Shown here piece by piece: positions 4,242 through 13,242 of a stretch of 64,000 nt of DNA. Position 1 is the first letter of the stretch; each line of letters opens with the position of its first letter. The stretch lies in the sequence record NC_048077.1. One strand, given 5' to 3'. The position numbers and the translations under genes were made by a program. A model generated the notes under the pieces. That model did no database searches, was not told where the DNA came from, and was given only the letters and a program-made list of their open reading frames with translations.

Positions 4242-4545
4242 CAGTTTCCTCCAAATCTTTGCGAATAGTAATACTGTCCGGATCAACGCTGTAGTTAAGA
4301 AACGCATCATACGCTTCGCTATCATCACGTTTGCGAATCTGGATATCGCCAAAGATTGTAACCTTATCACCAGCGTCAAACAGTTCGCTCACAATCGAAC
4401 GAACTACAGATTGCTTGTGGCAATACTGATTGTAGGTTACGGTCACTTGACGATCCCCGTTGAATCCGGGAGTGGACTCAACGGAAATTCGCATACTTTG
4501 ATCACGTCCAGTACGAATAATATCTTCAAGAGTGATATCGTACAT
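4207..4545 (-). CDS. Hypothetical protein
   Basis: 112 aa ORF in operon orientation, tightly packed with neighbours. Confidence 0.6.
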   Translation of the reverse strand: MYDITLEDIIRTGRDQSMRISVESTPGFNGDRQVTVTYNQYCHKQSVVRSIVSELFDAGDKVTIFGDIQIRKRDDSEAYDAFLNYSVDPDSITIRKDLEETDETGSSSTPVQ

Positions 4546-4550
4546 GGTTT

Positions 4551-5444
4551 TTATCCAAATAGATTTTTACGCGATTGCTCGTCGTTCGGAGTAAAGTAAT
4601 CAGGCAATCCATCACCCAACACATCGTTGCGATCAGTTACGCCGAAATACTTCTCCAGTTTCGCCGGAGTGCGTTTAGCTTTTTCATAACCAAACTTCCA
4701 GCACATCTTCAATACAGAACGAGCGCACTGCATTGATTTTTCCATTCGCGGATCAATGAACATTCGAATGACAGGAGTTTTCTTTCCCTCCATCGGCGTT
4801 AGAATACGGCACGATTCCTGTTTCCAGTTCGGTTCGTTATTCATCGGCATGATGTAATAAAGCGTATCCCATTTAGGAATGTTGATGCCGCGCTGCATCA
4901 GTTTACGCATACCAACAATGCAACGAATCTTACCTTCACGCGCTGCATCAATTACTGGTTTACGTTTCTTAGCCTCACGCGCCCCACCTAAGAACACTGC
5001 CGCAACTTCTTCGCAGTAATGCTCATTGATTCGACGCACAAGTTTATGCGCTTGATCCGTGAAGTTAATCGGAATAGCAAGCGAGCGGCCTGCATCCAGA
5101 TCTTTAATAATCCAACGGAAAATTTCTTCATTACGATCCGGATGTGCTGCGAGGAATTTATTGAAATAAACCCAACCAGCTTTGCCGTTATACTTCTGGC
5201 GGTTGTAGACTTTGTTCGACGTTTTATGAATCGTGATCTTCGGAACCATTTCTTCAACAAACGCTTCGGCAACAACTGGGCCAAATGTAGACTCAACGCG
5301 ATAGTGCAAGCAGTTATGAACTAATACCTGTTCGTTATCGTTTTCTCCTGATACAAAAAAGTTGTTATTTTCCAGAACGGATATATCGTATACCGGCCTA
5401 TCGTCTGGTTCCAGAATTTCTATTTGACTGATTTTAGAAAGCAT
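4551..5444 (-). CDS. Split-intein C-fragment (44 aa) fused to C-terminal half of SF2 helicase
   Basis: N-terminus contains intein blocks F/G (VYDISVLENNNFFV...VLVHN/C). This is followed by helicase RecA2 motifs (VAAVFLGG, IVGMRKLMQRGINIPKWDTLYYIMP, QESCRILTP). Confidence 0.92.
   Translation of the reverse strand: MLSKISQIEILEPDDRPVYDISVLENNNFFVSGENDNEQVLVHNCLHYRVESTFGPVVAEAFVEEMVPKITIHKTSNKVYNRQKYNGKAGWVYFNKFLAAHPDRNEEIFRWIIKDLDAGRSLAIPINFTDQAHKLVRRINEHYCEEVAAVFLGGAREAKKRKPVIDAAREGKIRCIVGMRKLMQRGINIPKWDTLYYIMPMNNEPNWKQESCRILTPMEGKKTPVIRMFIDPRMEKSMQCARSVLKMCWKFGYEKAKRTPAKLEKYFGVTDRNDVLGDGLPDYFTPNDEQSRKNLFG
5313..5444 (-). mobile_element. Int-C half of a naturally split intein
   Basis: MLSKISQIEILEPDDRPVYDISVLENNNFFVSGENDNEQVLVHN; terminal His-Asn followed by Cys(+1) at 5312-5310. 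Confidence 0.9.
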
Positions 5445-5485
5445 GATAATTTCACTTAGACGTGGCAGTAAACTTTGGAGAACTC

Positions 5486-6589
5486 ATGCGCAACAATGAT
5501 TGGCGTCACAATTTATTTTACAGTAAGTTGAAAGAACTTCACCCTACCATAAAGAGCTTAACGCCTTATGTTTCCGGACTAGAACCAATGAAGTTTCGTT
5601 GTACGGTCTGCAAACACGAATACACTAACAAGCCTAGTTATGTGATAGGCCAGCGTAAAACAGGATGCCCTGAATGTAAAAAGAATTCAGTAGCATCTAA
5701 ATCAATGGTGACTCGAAGCAACAAGCAAGAAGAAAAAGTTAAATCTCTTCTCGCAGGTTCGACCACGAAACTAATTGGGCGCATGGATAATATGCGTTTC
5801 TTTCTTCAATGCTCTAAGTGCAAAAGTAAATGGGATGCACATATAAATTCCATCAGGCAATATGTTGGTGGTGGATGCAGAGCCTGTACAAGCAAGGCTG
5901 CACAATTGCCGAGAACTTTAGAAAGCATTGAAGAAATAAAGCAAGCTAGAAGCGATCTTAAAATTTTAAATTACTTAGGTTCCTCTAAGGTTGAGTGTGA
6001 ATGCAATGAATGTTCTCACGTATGGAAAACTTCTATTCATGTTTTAAAGCAAGGTAGCGGTTGTCCTATTTGTGGAATGCGTCGTTCACTTTCTGCATCA
6101 CTCAGGCAAGATAAAAAGATTGTCCTGCAAGGAAAAGAATTTAATGTTGTCGGGTACGAAGCGTTTGCGCTTGAGTATCTAATTGAAAAAGGTATTCGTG
6201 CAAAAGATATTTCCGAAAAGACTATCGCCATTCCCTACAAACTCGACGGGAAGAATCGAAAGTACATTCCAGATTTATTTATCAAGAGCACGAACACTTT
6301 CATCGAAGTTAAATCTCAATACACGTTAGGCTTGAATGGATTGATGCACGGAAAGGATGCACTAAAAGAACTAAGAGCGAAGGTACGCGCAACCAAAAAA
6401 GCTGGCTACAACATAACAACGCTCTTAATTTGGCAACGCCACCAAAAAGCAAAACCAATTGTGATAAAGTTACCGGACAGTTGGACAGACTATCCGTTAT
6501 CACAGGTTCGCAAAAAGTTTTCAGTACAACTTCAAAACATCATCAGTAGTAAGGTCGATTGCATTAACGTAGCAACCGCGAGACTCTGA
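5486..6589 (+). CDS. Free-standing putative homing endonuclease: three zinc-ribbon repeats plus PD-(D/E)xK nuclease domain
   Basis: Three C-x2-C...GC-x2-C repeats (CTVCKHEY..GCPEC; CSKCKSKW..GCRAC; CNECSHVW..GCPIC) and YIPDLFIKSTNTFIEVKS. ATG 5486 follows GGAG; the ORF track starts at GTG 5462. Confidence 0.8.
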   Translation: MRNNDWRHNLFYSKLKELHPTIKSLTPYVSGLEPMKFRCTVCKHEYTNKPSYVIGQRKTGCPECKKNSVASKSMVTRSNKQEEKVKSLLAGSTTKLIGRMDNMRFFLQCSKCKSKWDAHINSIRQYVGGGCRACTSKAAQLPRTLESIEEIKQARSDLKILNYLGSSKVECECNECSHVWKTSIHVLKQGSGCPICGMRRSLSASLRQDKKIVLQGKEFNVVGYEAFALEYLIEKGIRAKDISEKTIAIPYKLDGKNRKYIPDLFIKSTNTFIEVKSQYTLGLNGLMHGKDALKELRAKVRATKKAGYNITTLLIWQRHQKAKPIVIKLPDSWTDYPLSQVRKKFSVQLQNIISSKVDCINVATARL

Positions 6590-7657
6590 CCAGATTTGAT
6601 GATCCTCTGTACATTCTAAAACTCCGTGTTCGTGATGAATGCGGAGTTTTCTTTTATCGCTCACAACTTTGTGAACCTGCATAACAGGCTGGATTGTTTT
6701 AAGTCCGGTAACATGGTCGAATGCAACAACCATATCTCCCTCCTTAATATCCTCAATGTTTTTGAGCGAATCATCTGCCATTCTAACTTTGTGTCCTGCC
6801 GTAAAACAATCTTTTCGTTTCGGTGTAGCTGTCAGACCGTAACGATATTTCATCTTCACGCTTGCGAGAATCTTCGTATATGTCGGAGCACCCGCTGCGT
6901 GAATTTCATCGACGATGATCGTACCAAAATGTTTGTTGAGAAGTTTCAATCGCTTCTTCGCAACTTTACTTTTCTCAAGTAACGACTGATACGTTACCAA
7001 AACAATCTGGAAGTTCTCATAGTCTTCGAGTTTCTTCGGAAAACCATAAAGTTTCTTTCCGTGCTTCTCTTCCAGTTCCGGAAGATTAGTCATCTTCTCA
7101 ATGGTTTCATAAAAACCATCAAGGAAATCTTTTTGGTCAGCCATGATTACGGTTTTATATCCGTGCGCACACGCGATGTAAGTTCCGCAAACTGTTTTAC
7201 CTGAACGTGGCGGCGCTTTAAACAAGCCGCACAATTCCTCCATGATATCGTCTACAGGTTTCTTTTGGTACTCGCGCAGACTGCCCGTGAATTTCACTTT
7301 ATAGTCATATGGCACGCGAGTTGTTTTATTCACAAAGCGCACACGATCAAGCGGCAATCCAGTCAGCTTCGGAAAGCGGTGCATTTCCCCATAAGGAATA
7401 GACACAACTTTTTTACCGTCAACCGTATCAAGTTTTCCTAATACCGTAACGCCGACTAGACCGCCAGTTTCGCAAACATTACATTCCGTGCTAGGCCGTT
7501 GAGAACGAAACTCACAATTTTTGCATATCGAATCTTCAAACTGATAGCGAGTGAGTTTCTTGATTATCTTCGGCGCGTCTACAACCTTAACCGGAATATG
7601 TAAGCGACTATCGACAACCACATTAATGCGATCATCGTCTTTACTTTTCTTAGCCAC
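6521..7657 (-). CDS. N-terminal half of SF2 (UvsW/ResIII-like) helicase fused to split-intein N-fragment (95 aa)
   Basis: Walker A APPRSGKT, DEIH box and motif III GLTATP, followed by intein block A CFTAGHKV and block B ECTEDHQIW; the ORF then ends. Confidence 0.92.
   Translation of the reverse strand: MAKKSKDDDRINVVVDSRLHIPVKVVDAPKIIKKLTRYQFEDSICKNCEFRSQRPSTECNVCETGGLVGVTVLGKLDTVDGKKVVSIPYGEMHRFPKLTGLPLDRVRFVNKTTRVPYDYKVKFTGSLREYQKKPVDDIMEELCGLFKAPPRSGKTVCGTYIACAHGYKTVIMADQKDFLDGFYETIEKMTNLPELEEKHGKKLYGFPKKLEDYENFQIVLVTYQSLLEKSKVAKKRLKLLNKHFGTIIVDEIHAAGAPTYTKILASVKMKYRYGLTATPKRKDCFTAGHKVRMADDSLKNIEDIKEGDMVVAFDHVTGLKTIQPVMQVHKVVSDKRKLRIHHEHGVLECTEDHQIWSESRGCYVNAIDLTTDDVLKLY
6524..6808 (-). 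mobile_element. Int-N half of a naturally split intein
   Basis: Cys1 codon at 6808-6806 directly after TATPKRKD; HINT blocks A and B present; no internal endonuclease. Confidence 0.9.
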
Positions 7658-7659
7658 GT

Positions 7660-8244
7660 TTATTTCCTAGTATTTGGGATTCCATATTCACGCTGATTAA
7701 TCAGGCCGAGAGTATCGACTAGAGTTTTGAAAGAGTAACCTGCTTTATCAATGTCTTTGATATACAGTTCAATCTTCGCTATCAACGAACTTAAATTATC
7801 GCAATAGCGGTAATACTCAGCCATAATATTTTTTACAGCACGCTCACGTTCTTTGGCTGCACCAACGGCTTTTAAATCGTTGCCGTATGCCACCGTAACG
7901 TAATCCTGAAAACGGCTCAACAAATCAGAAAGTGTTTTATAGCTTTCGCTAAGTGTCGCCAGAATTTCAGTCATGCGCGAACGGTAACTCTGATCTTGCA
8001 CCACACTTTCAGCAAGTTTATCCAGTGCTTTAGGTGAGTTTACAGAGAGTGATCGTACTTTACGCATCGCAAAAAGATCGTCTACCTCTTGTGCATATTG
8101 CGCGAGAGGCAGTTGGAATAGATCTTCGGTTTTGAACAATGCACGAATCTTTTTATAACGCTTATCATCTTTTACTTTCAGACGAATACGCGTCAGATCA
8201 TCCGTCGGCGTTCTCTTTGACATGTTAATCCTTATCCGTGACAA
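7660..8244 (-). CDS. Helical protein, possibly UvsY-like recombination mediator
   Basis: All-helical; C-terminal YIKDIDKAGYSFKTLVDT resembles T4 UvsY ALDAIKSRGFAIKHIQDM; adjacent to a UvsW-like helicase. Confidence 0.45.
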   Translation of the reverse strand: MSRIRINMSKRTPTDDLTRIRLKVKDDKRYKKIRALFKTEDLFQLPLAQYAQEVDDLFAMRKVRSLSVNSPKALDKLAESVVQDQSYRSRMTEILATLSESYKTLSDLLSRFQDYVTVAYGNDLKAVGAAKERERAVKNIMAEYYRYCDNLSSLIAKIELYIKDIDKAGYSFKTLVDTLGLINQREYGIPNTRK

Positions 8245-9825: not shown

Positions 9826-10081
9826 TCGACTCCACCACAAATTGAATTTGGTTGTTTACTCGCACTGACGCGATTCTCTTTCCTGATTTACAGAAAAGAC
9901 CGTTCAAGATCCCCACAAGATCTGTAACGTGACTACCAGACGTAGCCGCGTAAACTTCAATGTCATCCGGAATATCGTTTGGATTTAGGTGCCACAAAGT
10001 TCGTAGCACCGCATTGAAAGTTTCTGAACGTTCGACGAGGTTTCTGTTTAAAAACGTGCAAACGTCTTCGATACTAATCAT
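9812..10081 (-). CDS. Hypothetical protein
   Basis: 89 aa ORF coupled to the polymerase stop. Confidence 0.55.
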   Translation of the reverse strand: MISIEDVCTFLNRNLVERSETFNAVLRTLWHLNPNDIPDDIEVYAATSGSHVTDLVGILNGLFCKSGKRIASVRVNNQIQFVVESNEKV

Positions 10082-13000
10082 TTCACCGCAAGCCTCTTCA
10101 TCGCACGGCCTAACTTTTTAGAACTGATTTTGATTCTCTCTTTGACTGGAACTTCCGCTTTCGCTTGTGCCTTCTTCCACTCTTCGAGAAGTTTTAGGTT
10201 GCTAGGAATTTCTTTTTTCCACTGTTCAATGTTTTTCTTATCCTCATTGGTCAATGGACACTTCTTAGGCTTACTGCGCAATTCAATATCATTCGCCCAA
10301 ATTTGTTTCTTCATCCATGTAGACATGAGGTGATATTGATCATTCATGATGCTGTCGAGAGTTTTCTTAACATCAAGATCTTTCTCGCCGAGTTCATCAC
10401 GTTTGATTTCCAGACCTTTCTCCAGAATATCAAACAGCGCCTGATAGCTGAAATCCCAACCCTTAACATCTTTTTCCGTTGCACCGATTTCAAAGTCGAT
10501 TTCCGGAATGGATGTGAATTCAAAACCTTCGTGACGTTTCTGAACTACTTCAACTACTGCGCTTGTCATCGCACGTTCAATCATATCCAGTGCAAGGAAG
10601 AACCAATCGTAATGACAGTCAACGGTTAAGGAGTCATGCACCGAAACGTTGAGAACGAAATCAGGATACACGCCGTTCGCTTCCCAATATTCGTACTTCA
10701 TGCGATCAAGAATTCGAATAGCACTCATCATCAAGTCAGAACCAAAACCCTGAACAGGTGAGTTTACTGCGCGACGATCACACGACGCATAAACGTTATC
10801 CGCATCGCTATGCTGTTTAGGCAGCATGAATCCCCACAAGTGACGGCGACGACCGACCGGAGATTCCACGAAAAAGTTTTTGTGCGCGAATCGTTTGATT
10901 GCATCGAACCATTTCAGACCAACCGGGAAACGTTTAAGGAACTTGCCTTTGATTTCCACGATCTCATCAACTTCGCGTCCGGTACTCTTCGCCAGACCTT
11001 TATCCCCTTGCTGATAAATCAGACCAAAGATAACTGTCTTAACTGCGTTACGAATTGATTTCGTAACTTCCATGATATCAATACCAAAGAAGTATGCAGC
11101 GTTGATTTTATGAACGTCACCTTCAACTTCGATTCGGTGTGCAATCCATTTATCCGGAACAGTACGATAACGACGACGCAATATCGCGCCCTGTTCAAAT
11201 ACATCAGCAACACCCTGATCGCCAGATATAATTGACCAGCCGCGAACTTCGTGCGCAGAGTAGTCCACCTTAATGAGCATACGATTTTTACGCGCAATCA
11301 AAATACGCTTAATCAGTTTACCCATTTCAGAACGACTAGGTACTTGCTGCAAGTTTGGATCTTTCGCAGAAGTACGTCCGGTTACAACTCCGAGATAACC
11401 ATATGACGGACGAATTGATCTGTCATGTTTGAAGTCATCGCTTTCGCCCCACAATTTAAGCAGGCTGTTAACGTAAGCGTTTCGGAGTTTGTACGCCTTA
11501 TTAAGTTTCGTGAACAGCGCAACCATCGGATTATCAGCGTATGCTGCTTGGAAATCTTTATCCAGTTTACCAAATGGTTTTCCGTTCGGACGAATCTTGT
11601 CGCTCTCCTTCAACGGCTTGAGTTTCATCACGTCAAAGAAAAGAATCTGCTTGTGCTCTTGCGAACTCAAATCAAATTTTTGAACATGCACTTCGCCCAT
11701 CAATCCAAACTTCGGAATGTTGGAATCCTTCAAAATGATTTTGTTTGCTTTCGCTACTTCCGGACTGTCTAAGAATTCACGCTCAACGTTTTTGATTTCT
11801 TGGTTGATTGGACTGTTCGGAAGATTCAGTTTAAACAGATAATCAATGTCAGCGCCTGCGCCTGTACTTTCCAGAATACTAAACGCATGGATCTGATCGC
11901 TAATCTGTTGACTGACCATCGACTCATATTTGTCGTAGCCGATATCTTTCGCACGTTGAATTTGTTTCTCATGAATCAAGAACGGAATGATAACGTCAGC
12001 GCCTGCGTATTCCTGAACCTGTTCATCAAGATCTACGTCAGCAATTGTTGCACGTTGCGCTTTACCAAACGCAAGATCCAGATACAACTCACAACCGTAT
12101 TGCATCGTGAGGTTAGCTAAGTTGTAATAACCTTTGCCTGTTACCAGTTGAAGAGATTTCGCATTCTCATCGAAAGCAAACTCACCCGCCTGAACATCCC
12201 ACACATCAGATTTAAAACTGCGTACACCGAAGTTACTACGGATAACGTTTAAGTCGAACTTTGCGTTAGCGTAGATCTGATATTTGTTTTCGTTCTTCTC
12301 AAAGTAATCACGGAAGTCGCGCGAAATCTTTTTCAATTCTTTTGGACTGAAAGGACTGTCGCGATGGAACACCGGAATCACATACGCCGTCTTGCCGTCC
12401 ATACAAAACTGAACAGTAAGAACTTTGTTTACAATGCGATTAAGGTTTTCCGTTTCGGTATCCACTGCAACCTTTTCGGCTACAGCCAATTCCTTCATCA
12501 GCTTTTTAAACTTGCTGTACTTCGTGATGTACTTGAGATTCCAGTTACGATCTTTTCCGCTCGTTACTTTACGAATCTTGTACGGCATTTCACAATCGTT
12601 GAACCACGGCAACATCCAACGCGCCATGTAACCCAACGTGTAACTGGTTCCCACAATACTACGTGGATGCAGAACGCTATTATAACTTACGTTCGGCAGA
12701 TGTTTAAATTTGTGCGATACTCCATTCATTTTTATTCGTGAAGGAATGATCACACCGTACCAGTTACTGATATCACCTTTCGCATCATACGCACGCTGAA
12801 TCTTTTCTTTGTTCAAACAATGGAACGGTGCGCTACCAAAAGTCAAAACGATTTCTGGTTTGTACTCAACGATGATTTCTTTGATACGTTTACCAAACGC
12901 TTCTTCGGCGTCTGCTTTATACTGATCTGACTTGTCGTAAGTTTTAAACATGTTGAAACTAACAACAAGGAAGTTCCAATCGTCAAGCGTAGTTTTTAAC

Positions 13001-13242
13001 GGGAACGTATCTTCCAGATACTGAATCTGATTCAAAAATGTTTGACCAGTTACACCGCTAAAAATCTTTCCGTTTTCCAGATCTTCGGAAGGCATATGGT
13101 CAACAACAATCAGGGCTTTGCGTGCAGACTTTTTATCGGCGACACCTTTAAGGACTCGGACGAAATCATACGTCTGTTGATCCTCAAATTCTTTCGGTGC
13201 GTCATAGTCAAGAGTTAAGTGTTTTGTTTTCATATCGCCCAA
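10078..13242 (-). CDS. polA: DNA polymerase family A with N-terminal UDG-like domain and 3'-5' exonuclease
   Basis: Exo motifs VAVDTET, NAKFD, YAGAD; TGRTSAKDPNLQQVP; motif A DYSAHEVR; motif B RNAVKTVIFGLIY; motif C VHDSL. N-terminal GQTFLNQI / PEIVLTFGS / HLPNVS..HP is UDG-like. Likely ATG at 13233. Confidence 0.95.
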   Translation of the reverse strand: MGDMKTKHLTLDYDAPKEFEDQQTYDFVRVLKGVADKKSARKALIVVDHMPSEDLENGKIFSGVTGQTFLNQIQYLEDTFPLKTTLDDWNFLVVSFNMFKTYDKSDQYKADAEEAFGKRIKEIIVEYKPEIVLTFGSAPFHCLNKEKIQRAYDAKGDISNWYGVIIPSRIKMNGVSHKFKHLPNVSYNSVLHPRSIVGTSYTLGYMARWMLPWFNDCEMPYKIRKVTSGKDRNWNLKYITKYSKFKKLMKELAVAEKVAVDTETENLNRIVNKVLTVQFCMDGKTAYVIPVFHRDSPFSPKELKKISRDFRDYFEKNENKYQIYANAKFDLNVIRSNFGVRSFKSDVWDVQAGEFAFDENAKSLQLVTGKGYYNLANLTMQYGCELYLDLAFGKAQRATIADVDLDEQVQEYAGADVIIPFLIHEKQIQRAKDIGYDKYESMVSQQISDQIHAFSILESTGAGADIDYLFKLNLPNSPINQEIKNVEREFLDSPEVAKANKIILKDSNIPKFGLMGEVHVQKFDLSSQEHKQILFFDVMKLKPLKESDKIRPNGKPFGKLDKDFQAAYADNPMVALFTKLNKAYKLRNAYVNSLLKLWGESDDFKHDRSIRPSYGYLGVVTGRTSAKDPNLQQVPSRSEMGKLIKRILIARKNRMLIKVDYSAHEVRGWSIISGDQGVADVFEQGAILRRRYRTVPDKWIAHRIEVEGDVHKINAAYFFGIDIMEVTKSIRNAVKTVIFGLIYQQGDKGLAKSTGREVDEIVEIKGKFLKRFPVGLKWFDAIKRFAHKNFFVESPVGRRRHLWGFMLPKQHSDADNVYASCDRRAVNSPVQGFGSDLMMSAIRILDRMKYEYWEANGVYPDFVLNVSVHDSLTVDCHYDWFFLALDMIERAMTSAVVEVVQKRHEGFEFTSIPEIDFEIGATEKDVKGWDFSYQALFDILEKGLEIKRDELGEKDLDVKKTLDSIMNDQYHLMSTWMKKQIWANDIELRSKPKKCPLTNEDKKNIEQWKKEIPSNLKLLEEWKKAQAKAEVPVKERIKISSKKLGRAMKRLAVK

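Follow-up and report, generated by a model that had tools for sequence, protein, structure and literature searches.

The closest described systems to the locus discussed here are the fractured genes of Dassa 2009 (PMC2677866), where all 26 loci comprise three open reading frames (ORFs) on one strand with a spacer of 27-51 nucleotides, the broken host genes encode gp41, IMPDH, DnaE, NrdA, NrdJ, ligase or terminase, the nucleases are GIY-YIG or Vsr-like, and the inteins include gp41-1, gp41-8, NrdJ-1, IMPDH-1 and NrdA-2. In this article, I will describe a helicase gene at positions 4,551 to 7,657 of a 64,000-nucleotide stretch of sequence record NC_048077.1 (the whole stretch being referred to as the window), which is encoded as two minus-strand ORFs with a predicted homing-endonuclease-like gene on the opposite strand between them. 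Positions 4400-7800 of the window are 100% identical to the Dickeya phages vB_DsoM_JA11 and JA33 (jumbo myoviruses of 255 kb in the species Salmondvirus JA11), and it is highly probable that the JA11 helicase is broken by a split intein together with an antisense homing endonuclease, and is re-joined after translation. Both helicase ORFs are labelled 'putative DNA repair helicase' in GenBank, and the JA11 record MH389777 has no coding sequence for the 367-residue nuclease gene, leaving a gap in the annotation. Day et al. 2018 had noted both ORFs in JA11 and JA33 and left it unknown whether they are functional or were inactivated by a 'duplication'; re-joining by a split intein is very likely the answer to that question.

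Like the loci of Dassa 2009, JA11 has a split intein that interrupts a phage DNA-metabolism gene at a conserved motif, the intein is divided where endonucleases are canonically inserted (about 90-105 residues for the N-terminal intein half, Int-N, and about 40 for the C-terminal half, Int-C), and a free-standing nuclease gene lies between the halves. Unlike them, the host is an XPB-like superfamily 2 (SF2) helicase, outside their eight hosts, the nuclease gene sits on the opposite strand with a 69-nucleotide 3' overlap with Int-N instead of a spacer, and the nuclease is a PD-(D/E)xK protein of the DUF7487 family with an E-D-ExK motif and zinc fingers, neither GIY-YIG nor Vsr-like. An earlier interpretation of this DNA from its letters (the sequence-only reading) had matched the locus to the fractured-gene architecture, and this stands for the gene order and for the free-standing nuclease between the halves, but not for the one-strand layout, the spacer or the nuclease family. 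The kind of locus is already known; what is new is the protein that is interrupted, the sites of insertion, the family of the nuclease and the inverted layout. Among cultured jumbo phages, JA11 resembles the Pseudomonas phage MIJ3 (PMC6892783) in having a fractured replication gene, a split intein and an intervening homing-endonuclease gene, but in MIJ3 the host is PolB, the nuclease is HNH and the intein is Ser1/Ser+1. The cyanobacterial DnaE split inteins (Npu, Ssp) share with JA11 the class-1 Cys1/Cys+1 chemistry, the same split position and profile matches to DnaE chains, whereas their halves are encoded far apart without a nuclease gene, and the similarity is only distant.

The N-half ORF (6521..7657, minus strand) encodes 378 residues and carries, in order, the Walker A motif APPRSGKT, motif II VDEIH, motif III with the RKD that follows it (TATPKRKD), and then CFTAG...CTEDH...KLY and the stop. 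Its first 283 residues (6809..7657) are the N-extein, an N-terminal CxxC...CxxC zinc ribbon followed by the RecA1/ResIII domain of an XPB/Rad25-like SF2 helicase (Pfam ResIII at 2e-19 over N-extein residues 126-281), and the remaining 95 are Int-N (6524..6808, minus strand, CFTAGHKV...CTEDH...DVLKLY), with the stop codon at 6521-6523. The C-half ORF (4551..5444, minus strand, 297 residues) begins MLSK...VLVHN/C LHYRVESTFGP, where the slash, here and below, marks a splice junction, and is made up of a 44-residue Int-C (5313..5444, minus strand, MLSKISQIEILEPDDRPVYDISVLENNNFFVSGENDNEQVLVHN) with its own ATG at 5444 and a 253-residue C-extein (4551..5312 including the stop, minus strand) that matches RecA2/Helicase_C in Pfam and has its Cys+1 codon at 5310-5312. 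Between the two halves, on the plus strand, a 375-residue nuclease ORF (5462..6589) is open from a GTG at 5462.

What makes this anatomy compelling is the comparison with sister phages, since JA13 and JA29 possess a single uninterrupted 536-residue helicase gene at the same locus, within flanks that are 99.3% (JA13) and 92% (JA29) identical to those of JA11. Residues 1-283 of the JA11 N-half are 100% identical to residues 1-283 of the JA13 helicase, the C-half from residue 45 onward aligns with JA13 residues 284-536, and the two exteins (283 and 253 residues) add up to the intact length of 536. The mobile insert at 5313..6808, as delimited from the difference in flank offset and from megablast coverage, is exactly 1,496 base pairs (bp) long and is present in JA11 and JA33 and not in JA13 and JA29; it is in frame, the JA11 exteins are collinear from end to end with the JA13 protein, and once joined they equal that protein except for Ala284Cys, at a position that is Gly in JA29 and Ser in another intact relative. 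The halves have kept the original locus and order of the helicase gene, with the free-standing nuclease gene in between, and a second copy of the intein or the nuclease was not found in the window by HMM searches of all six-frame ORFs. It is a well-supported conclusion that this 1,496-bp element is freshly acquired in JA11 and JA33 and was previously unrecognised. The 'duplication' wording of Day et al. 2018 is all that speaks for a helicase gene duplication, and each of the two ORFs covers its own half of the JA13 gene without overlap; similarly, an assembly artefact is difficult to reconcile with a sequence that is the same in JA11 and JA33, two independent plaque-forming isolates, and with the same architecture in unrelated assemblies, such that an artefact or a duplication deserves next to no credence. 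The sequence-only reading had given the two minus-strand ORFs, the lengths of exteins and intein halves, an opposite-strand endonuclease gene and a product of about 536 residues, and had called for comparison with intact homologues in related phages: its coordinates and lengths are correct to the residue, the motifs that it named (Walker A, DEIH, TATPKRKD, CFTAG, TEDH, HN and Cys+1) are all there, the nuclease domain is on the opposite strand, and the comparison with JA13 and JA29 bears out both the length and, apart from the single substitution, the junction.

Turning to the intein itself, the residues for class-1 splicing are present in JA11, namely Cys1, the block B CTEDH (T-x-x-H), the VLVHN end and Cys+1, and blocks F and G of Int-C read VYDISV..NNNFF..VLVHN/C with the penultimate His, the terminal Asn and the +1 Cys. 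Int-N and Int-C were searched separately, as two pieces. On the N-terminal side, Pfam Hint, Hom_end_hint, Vint and related models match N-half residues 280-358, and a PDB search by phmmer with the single Int-N sequence retrieves a HINT domain in 8w20 at 6.5e-6 and, at 1.3e-3, the NrdJ-1 intein, which is naturally split. On the C-terminal side, the end of the Pfam Intein_splicing profile matches C-half residues 3-44 (under its gathering threshold) and NCBIfam TIGR01443 intein_Cterm scores above its curated cut-off on C-half residues 17-45 (18.4 versus 15.6 bits). The relationship becomes far clearer with family profiles from about 30 Int-N and 20 Int-C pieces of metagenomic relatives. The 30-sequence Int-N profile has the NrdJ-1 intein's N-terminal part as its best solved-structure match (7.6e-14) and also matches a bacterial intein-like domain (BIL), the DnaX mini-intein, gp41-1, RecA, DnaE and the hedgehog Hint domain, and the 20-sequence Int-C profile matches residues 105-137 of the DnaX mini-intein (1.9e-8), the separate DnaE Int-C chain, gp41-1 at 92-128 and others, so that the two profiles reach solved inteins at E 1e-8 to 1e-14 and at complementary ends. 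Cys1 and the block-B Cys and Thr are invariant across the 30 Int-N homologues, as is L-x-H-N-C at the Int-C end in the 20 Int-C homologues, and the break into 95 and 44 residues lies at the canonical position between blocks B/N4 and F, with the same division in relatives. The earlier assignment to a naturally split intein, and the HINT-profile search proposed along with it, are borne out by these family-profile matches and by the TIGR01443 score.

There are points that weigh against a re-joined helicase made from two separately expressed halves, and they should be told together: the single-sequence Pfam HINT matches are all under their gathering thresholds (Hint at 27.5 versus 29.7 bits), the single Int-C sequence gives no PDB match, the Shine-Dalgarno-like element before Int-C (AAGTGA, 8 nucleotides before its ATG on the minus strand, in the spacer at 5445..5485) is weak, and a sigma-70 scan recognises no promoter for the C-half or the nuclease gene, returning fewer sites than in shuffled sequence and none usefully placed.

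Could the two intein halves simply dock, being dead for splicing, so that the helicase is a non-covalent two-subunit enzyme held together through Int-N and Int-C? A report on Aeromonas phage NrdA, which is split by a mobile nuclease gene (PMC3045599), offers a precedent for non-covalent assembly, and a few relatives with an intein at the JA11 insertion point lack the block-B His; but JA11 retains Cys1, T-x-x-H, the penultimate His, the terminal Asn and Cys+1, HNC is invariant across 20 homologues, and the insertion came with an Ala-to-Cys change at the +1 codon, something that docking alone does not need, making a docked enzyme unlikely. A second possibility, that RNA splicing through a group I or group II intron carrying the nuclease ORF puts the halves back together, was dropped after an Rfam E-value scan of 4300-7900 and a gathering-threshold scan of the window returned nothing. 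This possibility takes its appeal from the zinc-finger part of the nuclease, which is related to ORFs in group I introns of Staphylococcus phages, yet no Rfam family reaches E<=1 in 4300-7900 or passes gathering in the whole window, the insert boundaries coincide exactly and in frame with intein blocks A and G, and the RNA of the supposed intron would contain the nuclease ORF in antisense, which renders an intron exceedingly unlikely; the sequence-only reading had itself raised RNA-level splicing as a challenge to its interpretation, and this challenge falls away in the absence of any Rfam intron model in the region.

The insertion has also left a scar in the exteins. Away from the junction, 31 of 4,875 positions (0.64%) distinguish JA11 from JA13, whereas the 33 bp that surround the insertion point contain 13 differences (P about 1e-20). 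Twelve of these changes are synonymous, falling in the codons for R, K, D on one side of the junction and L, R, V, E, S on the other, and the remaining change is that of the +1 codon from GCA (Ala) to TGC (Cys). On the 3' side, within the C-extein (5290..5312, minus strand), there are 10 substitutions in 23 bp versus JA13, synonymous except for GCA to TGC, and on the 5' side (6809..6815, minus strand) there are three synonymous third-position changes in the last three codons of the N-extein (R, K and D). The codons AAA, TTG and GTT are common to the intein-bearing JA11 and to two metagenomic relatives with the same element (L009 and L010), while both empty alleles have AAG, CTT and GTC or GTA, and directly beyond the 33-bp patch JA11 sides with JA13 against L009 and L010. 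Judged from these alleles, the patch looks like a short co-conversion tract from a diverged donor, reaching at most about 10 bp to the 5' side and about 24 bp to the 3' side, and it would also destroy the recognition site of the nuclease.

Furthermore, the parts of the element are under purifying selection. The ratio of nonsynonymous to synonymous substitution rates (dN/dS, or omega) was estimated for JA11 against L009 and L010, whose N-half proteins are 92% and 83% identical to that of JA11, at dS of 0.4-2, and comes to 0.05 and 0.07 (versus L009 and L010, respectively) for the N-extein, 0.06 and 0.06 for Int-N, 0.085 and 0.10 for the nuclease, 0.10 and 0.08 for Int-C and 0.11 and 0.10 for the C-extein, with an omega of 0.04 versus L009 for the nuclease domain alone. 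Constraint on the two intein halves and on the nuclease is as strong as that on the helicase, which remains constrained while fractured. These values bear directly on the proposal that the insertion killed a dispensable helicase, leaving decaying remnants with the nuclease gene as the sole functional part, a proposal that draws on the fact that Day et al. 2018 could not tell whether the ORFs function. Against it, the exteins of fractured alleles are under the strong purifying selection expected of intact ones (omega 0.05-0.11), the fractured state persists in relatives from 92% down to about 30% identity, and there are neither frameshifts nor internal stops, so a dead helicase is very unlikely.

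The sequence of events in which splicing restores the helicase would then run as follows. A selfish 1,496-bp element, in which an antisense PD-(D/E)xK homing-endonuclease gene lies between the two parts of a class-1 split intein, would have homed into the JA11 helicase gene right after motif III and the RKD. With the nuclease gene facing backwards, there can be no read-through of the intein, and the host gene would be expressed as two proteins, an N-extein with Int-N of 43 kDa and an Int-C with C-extein of 35 kDa. The basic Int-N strand HKVVSDKRKLRIHHEHG would pair with the acidic Int-C strand KISQIEILEPDDRPVYD to form the HINT fold, and splicing would take the standard four-step course, beginning with an N-S acyl shift at Cys1, continuing with trans-thioesterification to Cys+1 and then cyclisation of Int-C's terminal Asn, and ending in an S-N shift, to yield a 536-residue helicase of about 62 kDa that equals the JA13 enzyme except for Ala284Cys. 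In a mixed infection, cleavage of the intein-less allele by the nuclease would fall near ...CGT AAG GAC/GCA CTT CAC TAT CGA GTC..., and repair from the intein-bearing genome would copy the element along with flanking sequence, about 10 bp on the 5' side and about 24 bp on the 3' side, with the silent flank changes and the insert itself rendering the carrier immune.

The pairing of the strands deserves a comment, since charge had been singled out in the sequence-only reading. With the interface strands assigned by analogy with known inteins, the putative Int-N segment has 5 K/R and 4 H versus 2 D/E and the Int-C segment has 5 D/E versus 2 K/R, giving JA11 complementary local charges with N positive and C negative like those of gp41-1, whereas the polarity of DnaE is the opposite (N negative, C positive). 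The earlier count for the whole of Int-C, 9 D/E versus 2 K/R, is correct, but the novelty attached to it was rejected, since gp41-1 and gp41-8 already show the N-positive, C-negative polarity in Dassa 2009 (PMC2677866).

The nuclease gene is similarly informative. Its true start is likely the ATG at 5486 rather than the upstream GTG, because a GGAG Shine-Dalgarno sequence lies 5 nucleotides upstream and the homologues begin there, which gives a gene at 5486..6589 (plus strand) for 367 residues with three DUF4379 zinc fingers and a C-terminal DUF7487 PD-(D/E)xK domain. Pfam finds DUF7487 at 5.8e-18, DUF4379 at 1.5e-14 and a TnsA-like N domain at 8e-5, the DUF4379 part consisting of three treble-clef modules and the nuclease domain carrying the motif GYE...IPD...IEVKS, and in PHROG the protein is grouped with phage endonuclease families. 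The catalytic tetrad of E225, D263, E274 and K276 (E...D...ExK) is invariant across 9 nuclease homologues. In an AlphaFold2 (AF2) model, the predicted local distance difference test (pLDDT) score averages 80.6, is about 90 in the nuclease domain and falls below 50 for residues 351-367, which are modelled as disordered. A Foldseek search of the PDB with this full-length model gives no match at E<=1e-3, with no close solved structure, and the higher-probability matches, all of them weak, are PD-(D/E)xK nucleases (Cas4, lambda exonuclease, RecE, BsaXI and Hjc), so that the model supports the nuclease fold class only. PDB searches with the single sequence or the profile return zinc-ribbon noise and no nuclease structure, and because the family profile matches no Vsr or I-Bth0305I chain in the PDB, the nuclease is not filed as Vsr-like/EDxHD. 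Like I-Ssp6803I and I-Bth0305I (EDxHD/Vsr-like, PMC3239194), the JA11 protein would be a restriction-enzyme-fold nuclease serving as the mobility enzyme of an intervening sequence, but no sequence-level relationship to these was detected and JA11 has the classical E...PD...ExK motif with three treble-clef zinc fingers. Members of the family also occur elsewhere: in Pseudomonas phage PaBG (L011:2890-3714) a nuclease homologue is free-standing and inverted between the sbcD and DHH-phosphodiesterase genes, and the DUF7487 family is evidently also mobile as a stand-alone homing gene. On another contig, the nuclease at L007:5652-6815 has kept the PD-ExK domain and has N-terminal 'KxHGVxNP' repeats instead of zinc fingers, so that the DNA-binding module appears, from the domain content, to have been swapped, and a further free-standing DUF7487 gene (L007:2223-3467) lies 1 kb upstream of the helicase.

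At the ends of the nuclease gene the layout is compact. The 3' ends of Int-N and the nuclease overlap convergently over 69 nucleotides (6521..6589), where the Int-N frame is conserved and the nuclease tail is near-neutral (omega 0.88) and predicted to be disordered; because this tail drifts and is predicted disordered, the overlap looks like compaction rather than dual coding. At the other end, a divergent spacer of 41 nucleotides (5445..5485) separates the nuclease start from the Int-C start and holds the GGAG for the nuclease on the plus strand; the corresponding spacer is 29-47 nucleotides in most related loci. A hairpin with a T-run (6618..6650, plus strand; 15 pairs with A4/T4 flanks) lies 29 nucleotides past the nuclease stop, antisense within Int-N, and its conservation extends to the close relatives L009 and L010 and no further; by its structure and position, it may be a terminator for the nuclease transcript or may be coincidental.

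As for the host protein, the best PDB relatives of the intact helicase are the archaeal and eukaryotic XPB/Rad25 proteins (6.8e-11), and TATPKRKD aligns to TATFERED of Archaeoglobus fulgidus XPB. The R-E-D after motif III is reportedly a signature motif of the XPB family for DNA unwinding. As far as the evidence goes, the helicase would be a distant XPB-like protein and is not called an orthologue here; it scores far under the curated cut-offs of the NCBIfam XPB/rad25 models, so the label goes no further than 'XPB-like'. On the basis of this alignment, the JA11 insertion point (site b below) is placed where the ResIII/RecA1 domain ends, with the RED equivalent immediately before it.

The element is by no means confined to JA11. 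I examined 12 elements, in JA11, in the Yersinia phage fHe-Yen9-02 and 10 on 9 metagenomic contigs, and found the DUF7487 gene inverted in 11 of them, with a convergent 3' overlap of 24-69 nucleotides. The sole co-oriented element (L014:3501-7275) has the classic fractured-gene layout, and its nuclease, at 531 residues, has extra N-terminal repeats. In the cultured jumbo phage fHe-Yen9-02 (OR620964; L004:1730-4827), the same three genes occur in the same arrangement, the inverted nuclease overlapping the 3' end of Int-N by 64 nucleotides, and the element sits at motif II (FVDE/C...HN/CHSAN); GenBank labels these genes only as 'DNA helicase' and 'hypothetical protein'. Considering the metagenomic data more broadly, there are dozens of relatives with split inteins in the same helicase at two sites. 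Site b, that of JA11, reads T(A/G)TPxRKD/C...HN/C, and site a, inside motif II, reads ...DE/CFTxxHRV...LVHN/CH... and lies 32 residues upstream. The Int-N sequences cluster by site, 10 of 11 from site a falling in one clade, and each site has a separate nuclease lineage. The sequence-only reading had proposed a new allele at an SF2 helicase site, and I found no paper that describes this JA11 intein, but it is not a one-off allele, being one member of a large metagenomic family at two sites. A third site, in Walker A (GK/C...HN/T), is occupied by contiguous mini or LAGLIDADG inteins, found in longer helicase homologues of 713-914 residues (P0315, P0318, P0319 and P0321, and in P0322 only the HN/T end), and among the best 120 matches listed none of the longer helicase homologues has a contiguous intein at site a or site b. 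Some variants depart from the pattern. In four site-b Int-N sequences the block-B His is replaced by Glu or Gln (P0040 CTADEE, P0070 CTPDEE, P0074 CTPDQQ and P0083 CTEDEL), and these may be non-canonical or degenerate splicers; and in P0201 (797 residues), which also has a contiguous Walker-A intein, Int-N begins three residues past site b (RKDGLF/CFPAG), which suggests a shifted insertion point.

Contiguous inteins at the motif-II position do exist in another, unrelated SF2 helicase, namely in the Vibrio phages K459 (L012:2093-4174) and CP-T1 (L013:1883-4864), where the inteins (DE/CH) are 35-43% identical to JA11 Int-N, share their insertion point with site a, and have a CF(P/T)xG start and a VVHN/CH end. 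Unlike JA11, these are single-ORF inteins, either mini or with an internal insert, and the JA11 site is 32 residues downstream. GenBank names the K459 and CP-T1 products simply 'DNA helicase' and 'putative helicase' and does not refer to an intein.

Some relatives carry more than one split intein in the helicase. On a 172.5-kb Logan contig from ERR7528887 (L008:2613-8520), the orthologous helicase is in three pieces with three inteins, of which the LAGLIDADG intein in Walker A is contiguous and the two others, at motif II and after the RKD, are split. The first piece is 783 residues long, contains the LAGLIDADG intein and ends in the Int-N of site a; the middle ORF, of 176 residues, consists of the Int-C of site a, a 32-residue extein and the Int-N of site b; the last piece is the Int-C of site b with the C-extein; and a separate inverted DUF7487 nuclease gene accompanies each of the split inteins. 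An exhaustive HMMER search with this middle ORF recovered two further middle pieces, P0185 (168 residues) and P0187 (147 residues), each less than 50% identical to the L008 middle ORF and laid out in the same way with an extein of about 32 residues, such that at least 3 lineages (L008, P0167, P0185 and P0187) carry both split inteins and hence a three-piece helicase. In these pairs, the site-a and site-b inteins both have a basic Int-N strand and an acidic Int-C, and because both have the same polarity, charge cannot keep the two siblings apart; the acidic Int-C, taken in the sequence-only reading as a hint at orthogonality, would not set the JA11 intein apart from its site-a sibling. The chances seem about even that the JA11 intein belongs to a homologous split-intein pair co-resident in at least 3 lineages, where the 32-residue middle extein needs ligation at both of its ends, and whose members would have to be mutually orthogonal despite the same polarity for a working helicase to be made, constituting a natural three-piece trans-splicing system.

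What this offers to the community is first of all a laboratory pair, since JA11 and JA13 are cultured, belong to the same species and differ by the element and the 33-bp scar, and can be used to study homing, tract length and immunity in a jumbo phage. In addition, more than 40 natural Cys1/Cys+1 split-intein variants at two sites, including the co-resident pairs, are candidates for orthogonal multi-fragment ligation, and if the co-resident pairs are indeed orthogonal they would provide a source of dozens of pre-tested ligation pairs. The fractured-gene concept is extended to an SF2 helicase host, to a new PD-(D/E)xK nuclease family and to an antisense, end-overlapping layout, and the near-universal antisense orientation of the nuclease would point to a simple, general way for mini-inteins to become split, through invasion by a backwards-facing free-standing endonuclease gene. 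None of this changes a paradigm, but it offers an answer to an explicit open question and exposes a large natural family of split inteins.

Finally, in JA11 the DNA polymerase is intact, with 1,054 residues encoded at 10078-13242 of the window, and in the closest metagenomic relative (L009:21-2077) a NUMOD4-containing ORF lies just upstream of a 415-residue DNA_pol_A ORF, so the DNA polymerase may be fractured there.

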